Sequence record: OR545507.1
Length of the DNA: 64,000 nucleotides
Direction: 5' to 3' (one strand)
Shown piece after piece: positions 12,373-35,220 of the stretch. Numbering within the stretch: position 1 is the first letter of the stretch; every line of letters begins with the position of its first letter. The position numbers were made by a program, and so were the translations under genes. The notes below the pieces were generated by a model. That model ran no database searches. It saw only the letters and a program-made list of their open reading frames with translations, and had not been told where the DNA came from.

Positions 12373-12999
12373 TTACATCTTATTCGTGAACTTGAATTTG
12401 ATAATATCAATCCAAATTTTAACATTTCCTGCAAATAGTGCTTTGATTAGCCACATAATTGCAACAAAGTTCTCAACTAAATCCAAAGTTTTAACTACTG
12501 CACCGAGTGGGAAGATAAAACTCAAAACCCATACAATTACTGAAACCACAACGACTGTATAGAAAATACGCACAATCGGTGAATCAAGCATAAACAACTC
12601 AGAGAACTCTTTTTTATCATTATCATCAGTAATAAAGCATTCGTAAACCAGAAGCCAAATCAGAATTAAAGACGGAATTGAAATTAGTACTGATAGCATA
12701 TTTTTTACCTCAAGTTTAAGTGTTAAGTTTCAGACTACAGGAACCATTATACAGTACTACGAACGTTTGTCAACATTTGTTTCTTCAATAAGCATAAGAT
12801 AACTTAACACGAAGAGTAATACCGAAATAATATCAATAACTGTAAAGCTCACTGGAATGATAATAGACACCAGTACTAATGCCACGTTTAGCAAGAATAC
12901 AGTAGTGAGATCTACCATCGTTCGTCTAGTGGCTAATGCCACTAGTGTAGGATAGAACATAAACAATAGTGCAACAACAAAACTTAGTACTAGATACAT
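12373..12999 (-). CDS. Two small membrane proteins (12373-12699, 12757-12999)
   Basis: Multiple hydrophobic segments; promoter TTGACA-16-TATAAT at 12746-12773. Confidence 0.65.
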
Positions 13000-16305: not shown

Positions 16306-17574
16306 TAACGAACCTCCACTTCTTGAGAAAGAGCATGAGTCAGTGCATTTGAGTTCGAACCATTCATTTCACGCTGACATACAAACATAATGGCATCTTG
16401 TACTGAACCTGCGATTTCATACTCACGACCTTCTGGATCAGTTACCAGATGTTCAACGATACAACCACCTCTCAGTACAGAAGCACCAGTACTTACACTA
16501 ATTCTGTAACCTAAGAAATCAAACTGCATACATGCGTCAGTAGGTTTCATCCAATAACCGCTGTTTTGATTCAAATCGATGATTACAAAACCTTGAGTGT
16601 TAGTTTGAAACATAGTTAATTCCTCATTTAATTTAAAAGGGCGGGAACGCAGTGACGAGTACGATTATGCTGTCTTTCCTTTCACTGCATTCCCTTTGAT
16701 ATAAACATTATACTGCTATTATTCAGTACTGTCAATCGATATAAGTACCTTTTTTAACATCACAGACTTCTTCCATCCAATGTGGATTTTCGTTTTTATC
16801 AGTGAAGATTTGTTCTGCTTCTTCTTTTGTTTCAGCTAGGACAATACGATCCCCTTCATCCAAATCACGGATACGATACACTTTCAGTTCTTGTTTCTTC
16901 TCAAGGATATTACACAGTTCACGTGCTTTTTCTTCATCGCACTTCCCTTCATTAGCATAAAACCAAATTGCTTTTTTAATAAGGTCACGTTCTTCTTTAG
17001 AAAAAGACATAATATTTCCTATCATTTGTTAAAGTGGATTTCGTTTGATATAAACATTATACAGTACTGATATCTTCTGTCAAGTATTAATCACCAAAAA
17101 TCATCATATACCCAAAGCAAGCAACACAGATGACTAAAACTAACAATACCAACGATAGCCTCTAACATCATTTTATATCCTTAATCGATAATTTTATATT
17201 CACGATGACCATAGAAGCCAGCTTCAAGGATGCGATTACCATCAGCATCTTCCAAGTCCCAACCACGGGATGTTTCGGCAATAATAGTCATGATGTGACC
17301 TCTTGGGAAAATTCCACTCAGAGTGGATACATCCTCAAGTAATTGAACTTTCTTTCCAACATTGGAATTCGGTTTAAACATTTTATGGCCCTTATTCATT
17401 GATCACATCAAGTACTTTGTCCAGCTTTTTACCAATACTTTCCTTTGGTTTCTCACCATTCTGGAATACATTAGTACTGCAATACTCAGGACGCGTATTA
17501 GGAAACTTCTCGTTCATCCAGGAGTGACCGTAAACACCCAGCATGATGCCAACGATAAGAATGATAATTTGCAT
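16305..17574 (-). CDS. Small hypothetical ORFs (16305-16613, 16732-17025, 17181-17399, 17392-17574)
   Basis: ORF track; promoters at 16707-16735 and 17056-17083. Confidence 0.7.
16707..16735 (-). promoter_or_regulatory. Early promoter TTGACA-17-TATAAT(GTTTAT)
   Basis: Consensus hexamers; -35 overlaps the upstream TGA stop and an AGTACT. Confidence 0.85.
17056..17083 (-). promoter_or_regulatory. Early promoter TTGACA-16-TATAAT(GTTTAT)
   Basis: Consensus hexamers, AGTACT in the spacer. Confidence 0.8.
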
Positions 17575-17589
17575 GATAATTTCCTCTGA

Positions 17590-18378
17590 TTAAATGTTAG
17601 TAGTATAGTACTTGATTTCGTTTTGAATTGCAAGTTCTATTTGTTTATTGAAAAGAATTCCAAACTCTTTAATTGATTCACAATCGAATTCAATAGAAAA
17701 AGTATACTCTGGTACACGTACATTGTCAATACCCAAATACTCTTTTATGTAAATTTTAATGAGTTTACATAGTGCAGTACTAAGACATTGAATTTCAAAA
17801 TGTTTTGCACCTTTGTCAAAATACTTGAATGCATCAATATCACCGACAATAAAACTATTCTTTAATGTAGTGAATAGGTTCTCAGGAAACACGGTAATAG
17901 GTGACATTGATTTAAGAATGTATGTATCTTTGGCATTCTTAATGTACTCAATGAAGCAGTAGTTAACGTCAGGCTCGATTGAACGATCCGCGTTATGATA
18001 CCAGTGTTTAAACTCACTGTACTCAGCAAACTTATGCTGGCGTAATGCGTTACAATCTTCACACAATGCAGTCATGTTCTCTTTATCATTACCGCCCTGA
18101 AGACAGTCCAGTATGTTATGGTCTAACGTCATGCGTACAAGACGTTTCCCTTTAAGTACATAAGGTCTGAATTTATAACGTTCTTTAGTACTGTGCTTAT
18201 GTAAAGTGAATACCACATTGGATTCACCACAACAATCACATTTAAAGCCATCACGTGACATTACATGAATGAGTTTGCGTGTGTTCGGTCCAAACTCAGA
18301 TTTAGTAATGTTATCCACAATTTCTGATGGTTGGTAATATTTTGAATTCCGTTGAATCAGTTCATCGATAGTGCTCAT
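17590..18378 (-). CDS. HNH endonuclease family protein
   Basis: CDCCG zinc knuckle, TLDHN...GGND.EN...LCEDCN motif. Confidence 0.8.
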   Translation of the reverse strand: MSTIDELIQRNSKYYQPSEIVDNITKSEFGPNTRKLIHVMSRDGFKCDCCGESNVVFTLHKHSTKERYKFRPYVLKGKRLVRMTLDHNILDCLQGGNDKENMTALCEDCNALRQHKFAEYSEFKHWYHNADRSIEPDVNYCFIEYIKNAKDTYILKSMSPITVFPENLFTTLKNSFIVGDIDAFKYFDKGAKHFEIQCLSTALCKLIKIYIKEYLGIDNVRVPEYTFSIEFDCESIKEFGILFNKQIELAIQNEIKYYTTNI

Positions 18379-18815
18379 TTACATTATTCCTTCTATGCAA
18401 CAACCAAGAATTACTTTTTTAACTTCAACAACTCGTACCAAATAGAATCCATTTGAAAAGTTAAAACTATACATTTGTACTAAGGCATCTGCTTCAGATT
18501 TCGCACGGATACATGATAGATAAATTTCACGTATATCATCATCCAACGATACTTGTTTCTCTGCATTGATGACAATAGAACGAATCTCAAAACTAACACC
18601 ATAACTCATTGAGTTTGTCCTACAATAAGCTTTGTGTTAGTATTACTATTGTAACACCACATTTGTTCTTTATTAACTGTAATCCAAATATCTTTGTTTA
18701 CTTGTTCGTATGTACTATCACGTACTGCTATGCATTGATTCATGGAATTCATTGGGGTTATTTGTATACCGGAATTAACAGAGAAAGCGACTACTAAAAA
18801 GATTACTGAATTCAT
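18379..18815 (-). CDS. Two small hypothetical ORFs (18379-18609, 18606-18815)
   Basis: ORF track; promoter TTGACA-17-TAGAAT at 18880-18908. Confidence 0.65.
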
Positions 18816-18911
18816 TGGATATTCCTTAATGGTTAATCATCCATCTCTTCGAGATGTCTGTTCGCTTCTAATACTACGTATTCTACGCGAATGATTAATA
18901 ACTGTCAAGGA

Positions 18912-19395
18912 CTTTTAATATTGACGGGATTTGAGGAAGGGATTTTTCTTCCCCCCACAAGGAGGGAAATTTGACGCTGATGGTATCAGAGCTATTGCAT
19001 TGAAGATTACTCATAACGAGTGCGAAAGCGGGTCATCCTGTTTCTCTCTACTTCAGTTTCATATGACGGTCTACACTTTTAAACATAGTGTATCTTCATT
19101 AAGTATCTATGCAATCAAATACTTAATGTGAGTACTCAAATTTTGGACGCAACTTTCCTGTACAAAATTCGATAACTCTCCCTTAGATAATTCGTAAGGT
19201 GTTATCCTTATATGTCTATCAAGGAACCACCAGCTATCCTAACGTGGTTCTTTATACAGCCGCATTGCCGTGAGGGGTTCAAACTATGCCCACATCTAAC
19301 GGGTTTCTTTTGCTGTTCGCACTGTCGGACTGCTCAACTGCCCTCTACGTTTTCGAGTGGATCAGGTACATGAATATCATGCCAACAGAATTGTA
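18912..19395 (-). ncRNA. Candidate large structured non-coding RNA
   Basis: No credible ORF; visibly richer in GC; extended -10 TGATATAAT at about 19403-19411; at least 5 hairpins. Confidence 0.5.
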
Positions 19396-19432
19396 CAAGA
19401 TAATTATATCACAAACTTTTACTTCATCCCAT

Positions 19433-19463
19433 AAAAAAAGGTTGGCATAAGCCAACCTTTTTT
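19433..19463. terminator. Bidirectional intrinsic terminator after the sigma gene
   Basis: A7-GGTTGGC-ATAA-GCCAACC-T6. Confidence 0.9.
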
Positions 19464-19465
19464 CT

Positions 19466-20431
19466 TTAGAAATCTTCGTATTCGTACCCTTTTGCAAGTA
19501 CTAGCTTCTTAAGCTTTTGCATAGCTTCACTGTACTTTCGATGTATTGATGAACGGGATTTAACATATTTTCCATTATCATCAACAAAACCATTATCAGC
19601 AATCTCACGAAGCGTTTCAGGTTCATATTCACCTAGACCATGAACACGCTGGATAATCTCACGTTCTTTAGTACTCAATTCGTTAGTCAGTTCATTGATA
19701 GCATAACGTAAAGGTGCACGAATACTATCAACATTGAGGTTAAAATCAGAAGCAGGTGAATGAATAATGTCACCTAGTGTACCATCGGTAACACCGTCTA
19801 ATGGTGCATCCAGAGAAGTGTATTCGCTTTGAAATAACAAACAGTTATTAACATGCTGAATCTCAATCCCAGTACCCTCTGAGATTATTTCAGGAGTTGG
19901 GCGAACACCATGTTTACGCATATATTCCTGGCAGAATCTTTTTACTTTGATCTTATGAACACTCATATAACGTGGGAAGTGTACCATATAGTTAGCGTCA
20001 GAACTTTCGTTATAAACTGTCATGTAAATACTAGAAGAAGCATAGGTAATGAACTTCACATTCTTATTAAGATCAAAGGTTTTTAGTGCTCTCATGAACC
20101 CCTCAACACCATATGAAATCTTATCTTCAAATGGGATATAACAAGTACATTTACTTGCTACATCAATAATAAGTCCATAATTGTAACGAACTAACAGTTC
20201 AGTGTTTTTCTTTACATTGATACCAGCTTGAATATCACGAATTAGATCTTCATTGGAAACATTTGGTGGTCGCTTAAGTGTAATATTATATTTGAAACTG
20301 CTTTGTACTTTACCTTCATTTTCATCTTTATCTTCAACGAAATCTAAGGCTTCTAGTGTGTTGACTTCTTCATTAGCAAAACATTCATCCAGAACTTCTT
20401 CGGCAATTGTATTTAAATCAAGCTTTTTCAC
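19466..20431 (-). CDS. Sigma-70 family RNA polymerase sigma factor-like protein
   Basis: Region 2 (LVRYNYGLI...FEDKISYGVEGFMRALKTFD..KNVKFITYA), region 3 (PTPEIISE, YTSLDAPL) and region 4 (LSTKEREIIQRVHGL...ETLREIA). Confidence 0.9.
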   Translation of the reverse strand: MKKLDLNTIAEEVLDECFANEEVNTLEALDFVEDKDENEGKVQSSFKYNITLKRPPNVSNEDLIRDIQAGINVKKNTELLVRYNYGLIIDVASKCTCYIPFEDKISYGVEGFMRALKTFDLNKNVKFITYASSSIYMTVYNESSDANYMVHFPRYMSVHKIKVKRFCQEYMRKHGVRPTPEIISEGTGIEIQHVNNCLLFQSEYTSLDAPLDGVTDGTLGDIIHSPASDFNLNVDSIRAPLRYAINELTNELSTKEREIIQRVHGLGEYEPETLREIADNGFVDDNGKYVKSRSSIHRKYSEAMQKLKKLVLAKGYEYEDF

Positions 20432-20452
20432 TTACATCTCCTAATGACGAAA

Positions 20453-20950
20453 TCAAAATCGATATACATTAATATTATCATCTGTGAAGCAATCATGGTT
20501 ATGCACATCCATGAAAGTACTAAACACTTTATCATATAAAGTTGTATGTTCTTCATGAATAGCAGCATCTAGCATGTATTCTCCACCACTACCCATAAAG
20601 AAAGTGTAGTCTTCATGTAGATATTCAAGTTTTTTAATAAACTTTCCTTTAGTTAAAATCATATGAATAACATAATCTTTAGAAAGAAGCACACAATGGC
20701 AACTTAACTTTCTGTCAGGTATAACTGGTACTTTATTAATTAACCAATCCAGTACTTTATCAATTTCACTTACTGACCCACTAGCACTGAATAAACGGTC
20801 ATGTACATATAAAGTTTTTTGATTAACAACTCCATATTGATATTTTGGTCTTAGTGGGAAAAAACCAAATAAGTTTCGTGGTATAGTTGACGTAACTCTA
20901 GAATCGGTAATCAATAAATTTAATCGTTTATCAATATAAACAGTTGTCAT
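20453..20950 (-). CDS. Ntn-hydrolase / HslV-like peptidase
   Basis: MTT N-terminus, TDSRVT, ASGS and MGSGG motifs typical of the proteasome-beta/HslV fold. Confidence 0.6.
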   Translation of the reverse strand: MTTVYIDKRLNLLITDSRVTSTIPRNLFGFFPLRPKYQYGVVNQKTLYVHDRLFSASGSVSEIDKVLDWLINKVPVIPDRKLSCHCVLLSKDYVIHMILTKGKFIKKLEYLHEDYTFFMGSGGEYMLDAAIHEEHTTLYDKVFSTFMDVHNHDCFTDDNINVYRF

Positions 20951-20951
20951 A

Positions 20952-21963
20952 TTAAACCTTATCTAAGAATTTATCGTATATATAAAATTCTTTATCGGTG
21001 AATACATTAATTCTAGTATCGAATCTTTGCATCGTGTTCATATACAATGAACTTTTTAAATAAAAATACAAAGCAACAAATTCTGATATATGCATATTCT
21101 TTTTATTGTTACATAAATTCTTTAGCATTTTGATGCTATCAAATTCTTCTTTATCAAATCTGTACTGGTAAAAATTGTATCTATTGGAACGGCACTCATA
21201 GATACGAAGTGCCATTATATCAATACATTCTTTAGATTTACAGTACTTATTCAATACGTCATAATCACCCGTACATAATGCTACAAAGATTTTATGTGCA
21301 AGCGTAGCTTTGCCCTCAATCGTATAATAGCCAAAGAATTTAATGATTAAGTACTGAATGAATGTAATCATTTGATTTAGAATTTCTCCGAAATTACTAG
21401 AGTGTCATCATAATCTTCTGCAATCTCATGAAGAACTTTTAAGTTACTTTCACCAGAAACGCTTTGTACTTCGTTCAAAAGATAGTTTAGATCAACTTTA
21501 GTTACTTTTTCTGAATCAAATACACAGAAAGTCAATTCAGCGTTTGGACAGATCTTCTTCAGATTATCAGCAACAACTTGTTTGAAGTTGAAAGATGGGG
21601 AAGCAACCAGGTTAACTGCAACGAGAATAGATTTCATAATGTTTTCCTTTTTAGCTGATAATTAAATTAGGAGCACATTGTACTCCATATTATTTGTTAT
21701 GTAAAATACTTTTAGATACCAAGTGCAGTAGATAACTCTTTACGTTTGTTATATGAATCAGATTCAATCTTACTTTTCTTGTTGAAAAGGGATTCAATAT
21801 CCTTATAGATTGCTTCGATAGATTTAGTTACTACCCATTCTGATTCTTGAAGCATACCTTGGAGTCGTGCGTACTCAACTTTAATAGTACTGCGAAGTTC
21901 TTCACAAACTTCTTCATTCTTAATTAGTGCAGCACTAAGTTCTTTGACCTTATCGATGTTCAT
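20952..21963 (-). CDS. Three hypothetical ORFs (20952-21371, 21377-21637, 21712-21963)
   Basis: ORF track; promoter TTGACA-17-TATAAT at 21998-22026. Confidence 0.7.
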
Positions 21964-25111: not shown

Positions 25112-25227
25112 AAAAACACCTCATTATTCATTCACTACATGATAACACCAAATCATACACCAGTCAAGCTCATTTTTTGGATATGCATAATAAATACGTT
25201 ATAATAATTATACCAATGGAGGGATAA

Positions 25228-26382
25228 ATGTCAAGGTCAATTGCTGCGGCTGGACGCTATAAGTTTGGTGAATGTGGTTATGTTGTTGATGGTGCAATCC
25301 TCAACGATGGAACTAGACTAAAAAATATTAGAATCTATCGCCAAAGAAGCCATAGATTATATGATTTAGTTGATCCCAGAACTAATATAATATATCGTAA
25401 AGTACAAATAACAACTAAAGATAATAAAGGTTATCTATTAAATTACAATAAAACTAATGACCAACTATTAAGTGAAATTAATAAAAATTGTTTCTTTGTT
25501 CGTGGATATTCCGAAGAGCCACAAGAAACTGATACTGGATTTGTATATAAATTCATGCTACATAAAACAATTTTAGGTAGTTCACAAACCTTGTATCATA
25601 TGTATACACCTGAATGTGGTATTATAGATCGTGATATAGATAATATTCTCATTTCACCAGTATTTGTTGGTAATGACTCAATTAGTGGTAAATTATTCAA
25701 CACTGGTTCAGAAATTGATACTAACGGTATGGTAATAACAATCGTATTACCAGACGGGACAGAATACTTTACTACCCAATTTGTTAATGATGCATTTACA
25801 ATTCCAGTTGATGTTATCACACAATCAGGGAAAGGTACTGCTACGCTCACTTCTCCATATTATAACACTAAAGTGGTGGAATTTGATGTTCTTGAAAGTG
25901 GTGAGGATATTGATTTTGTTACATCAGTTCTTCTATCCCAATTTGAACCTGTTTCGGAAGGTGTATTTTCTGCGGTTGTTCCATTTGATGTTCATGATCG
26001 TGGACAGTACTTAGCACTTCAAGCATACAGTGGTGACTTATATCAAGTTGGTGTAGATCTTTCTGTAGACGCAGAAGGTAATATTACTGTGTATCAAACT
26101 GATAATTTACCTGTTTCTTTGAGTATAATCGGAAAAACACTGCATACTACTCCTTTCCATAAAGAATATACTTTAAGTGAGTGGGTTCTCGGTGAAGACT
26201 CTATGTACTCTATCTCAGTTCCAGTAACTGAACATGGTAAAGCACTACCACAAGTTCAATTATATTCTTCAGACAATCATGTAGTTCATAGTGAAATACA
26301 AGTGGATGAAGATGATAATGTAATTCTTAAAGTAGTAGAACCGCTTGACTGCTCAGTCGTAATAGTTGGTTACAACGCATAA
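25228..26382 (+). CDS. Probable late/virion structural protein with two tandem C-terminal beta-rich repeats
   Basis: Only credible plus-strand gene; repeats ...VVPFDVHDRGQYLALQAYS...VDAEGNITV and ...SVPVTEHGKALPQVQLYS...VDEDDNVIL; AATAAATA at 25189-25196. Confidence 0.65.
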   Translation: MSRSIAAAGRYKFGECGYVVDGAILNDGTRLKNIRIYRQRSHRLYDLVDPRTNIIYRKVQITTKDNKGYLLNYNKTNDQLLSEINKNCFFVRGYSEEPQETDTGFVYKFMLHKTILGSSQTLYHMYTPECGIIDRDIDNILISPVFVGNDSISGKLFNTGSEIDTNGMVITIVLPDGTEYFTTQFVNDAFTIPVDVITQSGKGTATLTSPYYNTKVVEFDVLESGEDIDFVTSVLLSQFEPVSEGVFSAVVPFDVHDRGQYLALQAYSGDLYQVGVDLSVDAEGNITVYQTDNLPVSLSIIGKTLHTTPFHKEYTLSEWVLGEDSMYSISVPVTEHGKALPQVQLYSSDNHVVHSEIQVDEDDNVILKVVEPLDCSVVIVGYNA

Positions 26383-26383
26383 T

Positions 26384-26412
26384 AAAAAAGCCACTACATT
26401 GTAGTGGCTTTA
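26384..26412. terminator. Bidirectional terminator between convergent genes
   Basis: AAGCCACTAC-ATT-GTAGTGGCTT with A/T flanks. Confidence 0.9.
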
Positions 26413-26423
26413 ATTTTATCTAA

Positions 26424-33372: not shown

Positions 33373-33980
<608 letters not shown>

Positions 33981-34031
33981 ATAAACCTCACTATACGTAA
34001 CTTACACCATATACGTCTGATTGTGGAATTC

Positions 34032-34056
34032 ATTATATCAGTACTGAACTATTTAG

Positions 34057-34061
<5 letters not shown>
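34032..34061 (-). promoter_or_regulatory. Repeated promoter copy b (TTGACT-17-TATAAT)
   Basis: 23-bp direct repeat. Confidence 0.85.
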
Positions 34062-34470
<409 letters not shown>

Positions 34471-34479
34471 CTTTTTTTT

Positions 34480-34967
<488 letters not shown>

Positions 34968-35071: not shown

Positions 35072-35187
<116 letters not shown>

Positions 35188-35220
35188 ATGTTATGTCCCA
35201 TTATATAATGAATTAATGAT

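Follow-up and report, generated by a model that had tools for sequence, protein, structure and literature searches.

The locus and its boundaries

The stretch of DNA analysed here (the window) comprises 64,000 nucleotides (nt) of sequence record OR545507.1, and the subject of this work is an RNA element of about 478 nt which lies in the gap beside a sigma factor gene, on the minus strand at positions 18919-19396. The evidence set out below makes it very probable that this gap is a functional structured RNA gene. Window positions 18800-19500 are 100 % identical to Escherichia phage vB_EcoM_G17 (accession number MK327931.1; hereafter G17), an Asteriusvirus, i.e. a RaK2-like jumbo myovirus, of 371 kb, and at least 99 % identical to 121Q, PBECO4, phAPEC6, Sharanji and other phages. 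Window positions are converted to G17 positions by adding 46223.

The gap had been pointed out in an earlier interpretation made without database searches (the sequence-only reading), and its presence beside the sigma gene is confirmed, i.e. positions 18816-19465 (650 nt) contain no minus-strand open reading frame (ORF) of at least 60 amino acids (aa). It had been described as the largest ORF-free gap; it is the third-largest in the window, and the largest without tRNA genes, since both larger ones hold tRNAs. The higher GC content and the boundaries given at the time were correct. The GC content is 41.1 % at positions 18919-19402, whereas the window as a whole has 33.4 % and the flanks 35 %. 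The upstream ORF (19466-20431) is indeed a sigma gene, with sigma-70 regions 2, 3 and 4 present, and its intrinsic terminator, annotated in the G17 record, is found outside the RNA at 19433-19462 (minus strand; hairpin GGTTGGC/GCCAACC plus T-run). Near this terminator, Rfam returned terminator-type small RNA look-alikes and nothing else. On the same side lies the extended -10 promoter of the RNA, TGTGATATAAT (19403-19413, minus strand), while on the other side a sigma-70-type promoter for the downstream genes (TTGACA-17-TAGAAT, 18880-18908, minus strand) matches the consensus at 11 of 12 positions.

Based on profile matches, conservation and covariation, the RNA consists of a core (18970-19396) and a 3' module (18919-18969), both on the minus strand. 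The nhmmer profile matches the window copy with an E-value of 5e-130, and conservation stops at ...CCCGTCAATA. From the promoter spacing, the RNA start is predicted at about 19394-19396. Most copies, whether from phages or from the bacterial islands described below, have TGnTATAAT or TATACT at the corresponding position, and the promoter resembles the one before the tRNA cluster at 35169-35208.

Coding potential and known RNA families

A protein-coding gene or pseudogene was ruled out by stop codons, indel lengths and a flat entropy by position modulo 3. Every copy carries at least two to five stops per frame, only 15 % of the pairwise indels are multiples of three, and neither variability nor entropy shows a 3-base period, so that the homologues show none of the coding conservation that would have spoken against an RNA.

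The sequence-only reading could not assign the element to a known family, and the searches now made agree. Using Rfam 15 (4227 families), the whole window at the gathering score and the region at an E-value of 10 gave only terminator look-alikes outside the RNA, and eight homologue loci searched at an E-value of 5 gave no family match. In particular, there was no match to 6S RNA (RF00013 and relatives) at the gathering score or at an E-value of 10, to the type A or type B model of RNase P RNA at an E-value of 10 (window copy) or 5 (the eight homologue loci), or to the models of ROOL, GOLLD, OLE, HEARO, raiA and T-large. ARAGORN found neither a transfer-messenger RNA (tmRNA) nor a tRNA in 18500-19800, and Rfam gave no tmRNA match either. 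Group I and group II introns likewise gave no Rfam match, and each copy lies between genes, has a promoter of its own and shows no exon context. A type III antitoxin of the ToxI kind would consist of short tandem repeats, which are absent from this single non-repetitive unit. The literature searched contains no description of this RNA. Judging from these comparisons, we regard it as a new family, i.e. one without a relative in Rfam 15 or in the literature searched, while large orphan RNAs in phages as a general phenomenon have precedents.

Several smaller candidates were tried and rejected. The hammerhead-like core CAGAUGAG is without the essential U, the possible T-loop in the loop of helix H14 turned out to be a strand of the crossing helix PK2 (see below), a mini-ORF after UAAGGGAG occurs only in a subset of copies, the anti-Shine-Dalgarno motif CCUCC is not conserved, and a CsrA-type GGA sponge was dismissed because there are no conserved GGA loops. 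Candidate remote homologues among the pattern hits that did not match the profile were all due to chance, one of them appearing coding-like by eye.

Covariation and the common fold

Folding of the single sequence was not significant (z = -1.3 on either strand) and therefore the case for structure beyond chance rests on the homologues and not on the window copy. RNAalifold applied to 41 copies predicted 76 pairs; in 51 of these, compensatory double changes are present. In a RIBOSUM-scored consensus of the alignment termed A4, 93.6 % of the cells were paired compared with 77.0 % in column shuffles, a value reached by none of 500 shuffles, and the covariation score of the same alignment was 0.453 vs 0.05-0.11 when the partners were slid by 1-3 columns. 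A mutual-information scan of 62 copies recovered the same helices and four further, crossing ones. The helices of the G17 copy and the four crossing helices were then written onto an independent MAFFT alignment of 61 non-redundant copies, where 86 of the 113 proposed pairs (pseudoknots included) showed double changes, and the four crossing helices, PK1, PK2, PK3 and PK-alpha, were 99.5-100 % paired. Thus the covariation among homologues that the sequence-only reading had proposed looking for is present. Helices 2-4, 9, 14, 15 and 23 were weak in the 61-copy alignment, being either G17-specific or situated where the alignment is unreliable; on alignment A4, helices 1-3 reached 91-93 %. About 80 positions, mostly unpaired, are invariant among the 61 sequences, whose mean column identity is 45 %. 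The element is under strong selection for one elaborate fold, comprising about 20 helices and four crossing long-range helices.

In the minus-strand sense the fold is rich in G-U pairs, e.g. GU:38/AU:23 and UG:33/CG:28, indicating that it belongs to the promoter-bearing strand. Four of the six helices originally named were borne out by compensatory changes, i.e. CATGA/TCATG, GAACCAC/GTGGTTC, CATTAAGTAT/ATACTTAATG and TACAC/GTGTA. The other two did not hold: for ATAAC..CCTTA/TAAGG..GTTAT, covariation pairs the first UAAG with CUUA instead, and GGAAG/CTTCC is found in the window copy alone.

The core is organized into domains, all given here in the minus-strand sense. The 5' domain (19320-19388), defined by covariation, includes H1 (19382-19388:19322-19328), H2 (19377-19381:19369-19373) and H3 (19355-19365:19338-19345), all three with compensatory changes and the last with the conserved loop GAAAAYGUA, together with an invariant UGAG. 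PK1 (19331-19332:19320-19321) crosses H1 and is 100 % paired among the 61 copies, with the combinations UA/AU/CG and AU/UA.

The central domain (19195-19316), in which helices 7, 8, 10, 11 and 12 are 100, 100, 100, 88 and 97 % paired, respectively, contains H5 (19312-19316:19256-19260), H6 (19299-19302:19268-19271), which encloses a variable hairpin, H9 (19244-19250:19224-19230) and H11 (19207-19210:19195-19198). PK3 (19263-19265:19212-19214; AUG:CAU) is 100 % paired, with one pair being GC in 48 and AU in 13 copies. The invariant blocks of this domain are GAAACCCGU, CACGGCAAUGCGGC, UAUAAAG and GAUAGAC. It is followed by a long hairpin (19130-19178; GAGU:ACUC plus AAUUUUG:CAAAAUU) bearing the conserved apical module GUACA..AAAGUUGCGUCC. 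Depending on the copy, the conserved module (GUACAAUAUAGAUCCGUCCAAAAUU) occupies one of two alternative hairpins, and the fourth G17 copy has both; peripheral elements of ribozymes swap position in a similar way.

Within the 3' core domain (18994-19128), helices 16, 18, 20, 21 and 22 are 88-100 % paired. Its parts are H14 (19119-19128:19097-19106), H15 (19088-19092:19072-19076), H17 (19051-19055:19001-19005), H18 (19044-19048:19024-19028) and H20 (19018-19021:19009-19012), with GACCGU, AGAAAC and ACCCGCUU as invariant blocks. PK2 joins the H14 loop (19109-19115, AUUGCAU) to 18994-19000 (AUGCAAU), with double changes in all seven pairs and 99.5 % pairing, and PK-alpha (19063-19067:19032-19036, GUCAU:AUGAC) crosses both H17 and H18 and is 100 % paired.

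Transcription

Assembled contigs from three runs, chosen because they hold this stretch, were placed on window positions 17500-21000; these contigs carry no strand information. In one wastewater metatranscriptome a contig covers 19040-19338; in a second, two contigs lie at 18831-18981 and 19103-19253. The third, an RNA-seq run, contributed contigs at 18936-19220 and 19247-19296 and a further piece of low depth at 17867-18026. Across the same interval, none of the three runs gave a contig on the sigma gene. Of the words in the neighbouring 6 kb of coding sequence, these runs contain less than 5 %, a level that other samples of the same study do reach. That contigs cover the RNA but not its flanks suggests that the RNA is independently transcribed. 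With its own promoter, a covarying fold and contigs within or just beside the RNA, the structured non-coding transcription unit on the minus strand that the sequence-only reading had proposed is supported.

Copies in jumbo phages

By blastn, about 440 nt of the gap are kept at around 70 % identity in 71 jumbo-phage records, with hosts from nine genera (Escherichia, Klebsiella, Salmonella, Erwinia, Yersinia, Serratia, Pectobacterium, Cronobacter and 'Xanthomonas'). Each record has 3-5 matching places, in every RaK2-like phage examined. The INPHARED matches were RaK2-like jumbo phages only, with no temperate phage among them, and 46 loci were obtained from IMG/VR by exact-pattern scanning, each on a contig of 350-380 kb or on a shorter one, with 2-4 per large contig. 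In the jumbo-phage records the region is nearly always unannotated or filled with tiny hypothetical ORFs, and the 3-5 tiny hypothetical proteins annotated across the element are most likely over-annotation. About 2 kb per jumbo-phage genome are unannotated or mis-annotated, which can now be corrected. In the record of phage UE-S1, part of the element is labelled 'repeat_region' (L001:3449-3606).

Searching the whole G17 genome with a profile of 13 homologues revealed four copies, all on the minus strand, with E-values of 1e-81 to 1e-130. Besides the copy described above (profile match at window positions 18881-19418), these are located downstream of an adenine methyltransferase gene (copy 2; G17 310872-311384, L019:673-1185), antisense between the plus-strand baseplate and endonuclease VII late genes (copy 3; G17 176075-176606, L016:15876-16407) and overlapping the small ORF G17_00407 (copy 4; G17 254813-255406, L017:44614-45207). 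Copies 2-4 are without RNA annotation in the G17 record. The four are about 70 % identical to one another, with long identical blocks in common, and their best matches in other phages sit at syntenic positions, i.e. at baseplate/endonuclease VII in Munch and at the methyltransferase in XbC2 and TH47.

Homologues in bacterial islands

Scanning metagenomes, and one genome per species, for patterns and then screening the hits with the profile yielded a further 74 true matches. Full-length homologues were found in bacterial chromosomes and in metagenome-assembled genomes (MAGs) with E-values of 1e-56 to 1e-98. The carriers are Serratia fonticola and Serratia sp. L9 (chromosomes), Citrobacter amalonaticus, Enterobacter chinensis, Silvania hatchlandensis and Serratia sp. 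2723 (contigs), an Enterobacteriaceae isolate, Buttiauxella and Enterobacteriaceae MAGs, and E. coli; the plasmids searched gave no match. All bacterial copies are full length and have the same invariant blocks, the 3' module and their own TGnTATAAT or TATACT promoter.

These copies lie in small integrative islands of Enterobacterales, about 10 kb in size where their limits were defined, with one copy to an island as compared with several in each jumbo phage. The common order is integrase, RNA, CI-like repressor, membrane protein, LprI-like protein, small serine invertase and variable defence cargo. Nine loci have a large serine recombinase as integrase and three have a tyrosine recombinase, and the convergent CI-like repressor (HTH plus S24 peptidase) follows the RNA in ten loci. 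A conserved protein of about 286 aa, which looks like a membrane protein, co-occurs with the RNA in ten island loci; it could not be assigned to a family in Pfam, PHROGs, NCBIfam or PADLOC, and a search of Atlas was uninformative. As defence cargo we found either Kiwa KwaA/KwaB or DarT with an ADP-ribosylglycohydrolase and a helicase, with DUF4326/DUF488/dual-OB as further variable cargo. In E. coli LR-29-1 an island of about 10 kb, devoid of genes for phage structural proteins, occupies the site between ffs and ybaA, and the island version occurs in 2 of 5426 complete E. coli genomes. Such islands may be phage satellites. A variant in the Serratia fonticola chromosome (L214:61-4155) has a large serine recombinase and two ParB/RepB-like genes, followed by the RNA on the opposite strand, and adjoins a duplicated rof gene and tilS.

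A comparison of the island proteins with G17 gave no shared homologue except a DUF4326 cargo gene. The RNA is found in two kinds of mobile element whose only common trait is host range. In a quick tree of 61 copies (support values unexamined), island and phage copies interleave, which suggests repeated exchange.

Such a distribution might also be expected of a selfish mobile RNA or DNA element, similar to an intron or a miniature inverted-repeat transposable element and functionless for its carrier, considering that the RNA is multi-copy, is present in unrelated mobile elements, shows interleaving of island and phage copies and carries the short direct repeat CGUCAR at the core end and the 3' end. 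We consider this very improbable. The conserved syntenic positions and the divergence of about 30 % indicate ancient paralogues rather than recent spread, the intergenic setting with an own promoter and no exon context, together with the missing group I/II intron match, does not resemble that of an intron, and the roughly 80 positions that are under purifying selection in each of the copies point to function.

The island cargo brings in a further alternative, i.e. that the RNA is an antitoxin or decoy in phage-defence conflict, restraining either an effector encoded by the island or a defence of the host, as the RNA of a type III toxin-antitoxin (TA) system does, with several early-expressed phage copies neutralizing the island system. 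Some phages use a pseudo-ToxI to neutralize type III TA systems. The Kiwa and DarT/ADP-ribosylglycohydrolase genes of the islands, the 286-aa protein accompanying the RNA in ten loci, the phages having the RNA but not this protein, and the strong host-type promoters with multiple phage copies would all be consistent with such a role. Nevertheless, the RNA is core and syntenic in every RaK2-like genus examined and not a sporadic accessory, and it is a pseudoknotted single unit of 480 nt, whereas the RNA antitoxins known to us are short tandem repeats. Moreover, the RNA and the 286-aa gene do not form one operon, as the convergent repressor gene is usually found between them, and islands present in 2 of 5426 complete E. 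coli genomes give a weak selective reason for universal phage carriage. An antitoxin or decoy is therefore rather improbable.

The distribution also bears on the sigma gene. It was proposed in the sequence-only reading that the RNA might be a 6S-like sigma decoy, i.e. one acting on RNA polymerase or on the neighbouring phage sigma factor. Like 6S RNA, this is a non-coding RNA that possibly acts on the transcription machinery, and in Asteriusvirus it adjoins a sigma-70-family gene and has an early promoter. However, in Eneladusvirus, Mimasvirus and Munch-like phages the element occurs in neighbourhoods unlike the G17 sigma locus, only one of the four copies in G17 is close to this sigma gene, and the islands have no sigma gene. 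Since the other genera, the islands and the other G17 copies lie elsewhere, adjacency to the sigma gene is incidental and peculiar to the genus. The architecture differs as well: the fold is multi-domain with four crossing helices, unlike the extended hairpin of about 180 nt with a central bubble of 6S RNA, to which no match was obtained even at an E-value of 10. We therefore give a 6S-like decoy almost no credence, and the proposed link to sigma is not supported, so that the earlier interpretation stands in part only. The paralogous copies, the pseudoknots and the homologues in bacterial chromosomes had been beyond the reach of the sequence-only reading.

The 3' module and a possible role in replication

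The 3' module (18919-18969, minus strand) consists of a hairpin (18961-18968:18949-18956) with an invariant GGGGGG and the tail CAAAUCCCGUCAA (18921-18933), which repeats the CGUCAA of the core end (about 18971-18976). It is found in 61 of the 61 copies, and in G17 it occurs four times only, each time joined to the core. The G side of the hairpin is invariant and the C side is C or U, so that G-U pairs are kept. About half of the copies have a hairpin and U-run between the core and the 3' module. For a simple RNA acting in trans, retention of the module past these terminator-like hairpins is harder to explain than for an element working in cis or at the DNA level.

The alternative of a replication origin, already raised in the sequence-only reading, therefore has to be considered, here in the form of an RNA-primed origin acting in cis. 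The promoter would give rise to a structured transcript that serves as primer, much as RNA II does in ColE1 or as happens at the R-loop origins of T4. A persistent hybrid around the G-run and the CGUCAR module would be processed to start DNA synthesis, giving 3-5 origins per phage, and the islands' copy would serve replication with host factors or amplification upon phage infection. This would account for the 3-5 dispersed copies at conserved positions (in G17 in one orientation), for the 3' module (G-run hairpin with invariant G6, and CAAAUCYCGUCAR) persisting past terminator-like hairpins, for CGUCAR being repeated at the core end and the very 3' end, and for the islands of about 10 kb having no recognised replication gene. 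With RNA II (about 550 nt) and the T4 origins the element has in common a promoter, a long structured transcript of similar length and a G-rich stretch near the 3' end. Relatives of T4 use several R-loop origins (oriF and oriG in T4 itself), i.e. dispersed copies as seen here, and RNase H could act on the RNA, the phage itself encoding RNase H-type enzymes in addition to any host enzyme.

On the other hand, the GC skew over the assembled G17 genome, suggested earlier as a check for an origin, tracks gene orientation only and gave no origin signal, which is weak evidence as far as the phage is concerned. The constraint is far heavier than in RNA II or the T4 origins, since known primer RNAs need far less than four pseudoknots together with some 80 invariant positions, most of which are unpaired. 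Furthermore, there is no conserved antisense promoter or RNA I analogue as expected for the ColE1 type, i.e. no conserved antisense regulator, and the opposite-strand TTGACG (minus-35-like) lacks a conserved -10, which would fall in the covarying PK2 strand. An AT-rich unwinding element could not be clearly recognised, and the metatranscriptomes recover the RNA as if it were abundant and stable. On balance we consider an RNA-primed origin unlikely.

Within 18919-18976, the two CGUCAR motifs (core end and 3' end) change identity together in all copies, being either G/G or A/A, and the U/C pair upstream of each co-varies likewise. This may reflect phylogeny, a shared ligand or alternative pairing.

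Possible function of the RNA

Beyond the functional RNA gene itself, we rather favour an RNA that acts in trans in its folded form. Transcription by host RNA polymerase would run from about 19396 to about 18919, in early infection for the phage copies and constitutively for those of the islands, and the transcript would fold into a compact particle working in trans. All invariant positions are kept in unrelated gene contexts, and hence the RNA seems to need only itself and something universal in enterobacteria. Candidate activities, which would be in the service of the mobile elements, are those of a ribozyme, of a self-assembling or scaffold RNA similar to ROOL and GOLLD, or of a tight binder of a conserved enterobacterial machine.

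Several observations weigh against an RNA acting in trans. The four G17 copies have one orientation and are spread round the genome, as replication origins might be, and the invariant 3' module is kept even downstream of a terminator-like hairpin and U-run. The folding energy of the single sequence is unremarkable compared with shuffles. The evidence for the RNA itself consists of assembled contigs of preselected runs, where DNA carry-over is not fully excludable, and the RNA ends are predicted rather than mapped. Finally, action in trans is a deduction from fold and distribution.

In its size, its four pseudoknots, its swapped module and the large number of invariant nucleotides left unpaired, the RNA resembles ribozymes and 'ornate' RNAs. 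To our knowledge, few large RNAs are rich both in pseudoknots and in invariant nucleotides, and those known are mostly ribozymes or core cellular machines. The orphan classes ROOL, GOLLD, OLE and raiA proved structurally unprecedented. Among these, ROOL and GOLLD are large ornate RNAs of phages and prophages with structures determined by cryo-electron microscopy (bioRxiv 10.1101/2024.12.08.627333). Our RNA resembles these two in being hundreds of nt long and highly structured, with many conserved unpaired nucleotides, and in forming independent units borne by phages or mobile elements; by analogy with the cage contacts of ROOL and GOLLD, its PK2-type loop-to-strand pairings could be intermolecular. 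In contrast, it matches neither Rfam model, its hosts are Enterobacterales and their jumbo phages, it is present as several diverged paralogues per genome vs one gene, and it does not lie beside tRNA genes.

With tmRNA and RNase P RNA (350-400 nt) the element shares its size, multiple pseudoknots and invariant single-stranded blocks, and ACAG..ACCCGCUU is superficially like the CR-V region of RNase P, a resemblance we treat as a lead only. Unlike these RNAs, it has no tRNA-like end pairing, no tag reading frame and no GGAAAGUCC-type partner strand. A further comparison is offered by the jumbo phage PA5oct, a distant relative of the RaK2-like phages with similarly sized non-coding RNAs: its ncRNA001-004 are abundant non-coding transcripts of 236-619 nt detected by RNA-seq, and ncRNA002 (451 nt) accounts for about 5 % of phage reads in early and middle infection (PMC7318152). 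However, the two that were compared, ncRNA001 and ncRNA002, showed no similarity to our RNA in nhmmer at an E-value of 10 with filters off.

It is tempting to speculate that the RNA is a catalytic or self-assembling machine serving phages and islands, e.g. a ribozyme, or a cage or ring in which PK2 pairings make the paralogues orthogonal, or else an origin primer of a new type; this remains a tentative proposal, and we hold it as possible rather than probable. If the machine reading were true, jumbo phages and defence-carrying islands would be exchanging an RNA on which both depend, and if the origin-primer reading were true, small islands would copy the primer so that the phage amplifies them. 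Either would amount to a new functional class of RNA in phage biology. The sharing with defence-carrying islands points to a role in conflict between mobile element and host, or in replication. Culturable E. coli phages (G17, 121Q, PBECO4, phAPEC6 and Sharanji) carry the RNA, which makes genetics and biochemistry possible, and the natural sets of 3-5 diverged paralogues per genome are a practical advantage.

Additional observations

Downstream of the RNA, the 262-aa ORF at 17590-18378 (minus strand), described in the G17 record as similar to an HNH endonuclease, had no Pfam match at an E-value of 0.001. Two more stretches of the window, 25112-25595 and 25851-26423, are without minus-strand ORFs of at least 60 aa. 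Inside the terminal repeat of G17, positions 19040-20934 (L014) form an unannotated region of about 1.9 kb with one predicted terminator; it gave no match to the profile of the present RNA and is unrelated to this family.

Beside tRNA genes, the window contains a 161-nt tandem duplication (34623-34944) with 83 % identity. GTAC recurs in the stems of many terminator-like hairpins. A promoter-like consensus, TTGAC(A/T)...CAGTACTGTATAAT, is repeated on the minus strand at 2119-2156, 12742-12774, 17047-17091, 33569-33609, 34029-34069 and 34433-34478, and probably represents a phage early promoter class.

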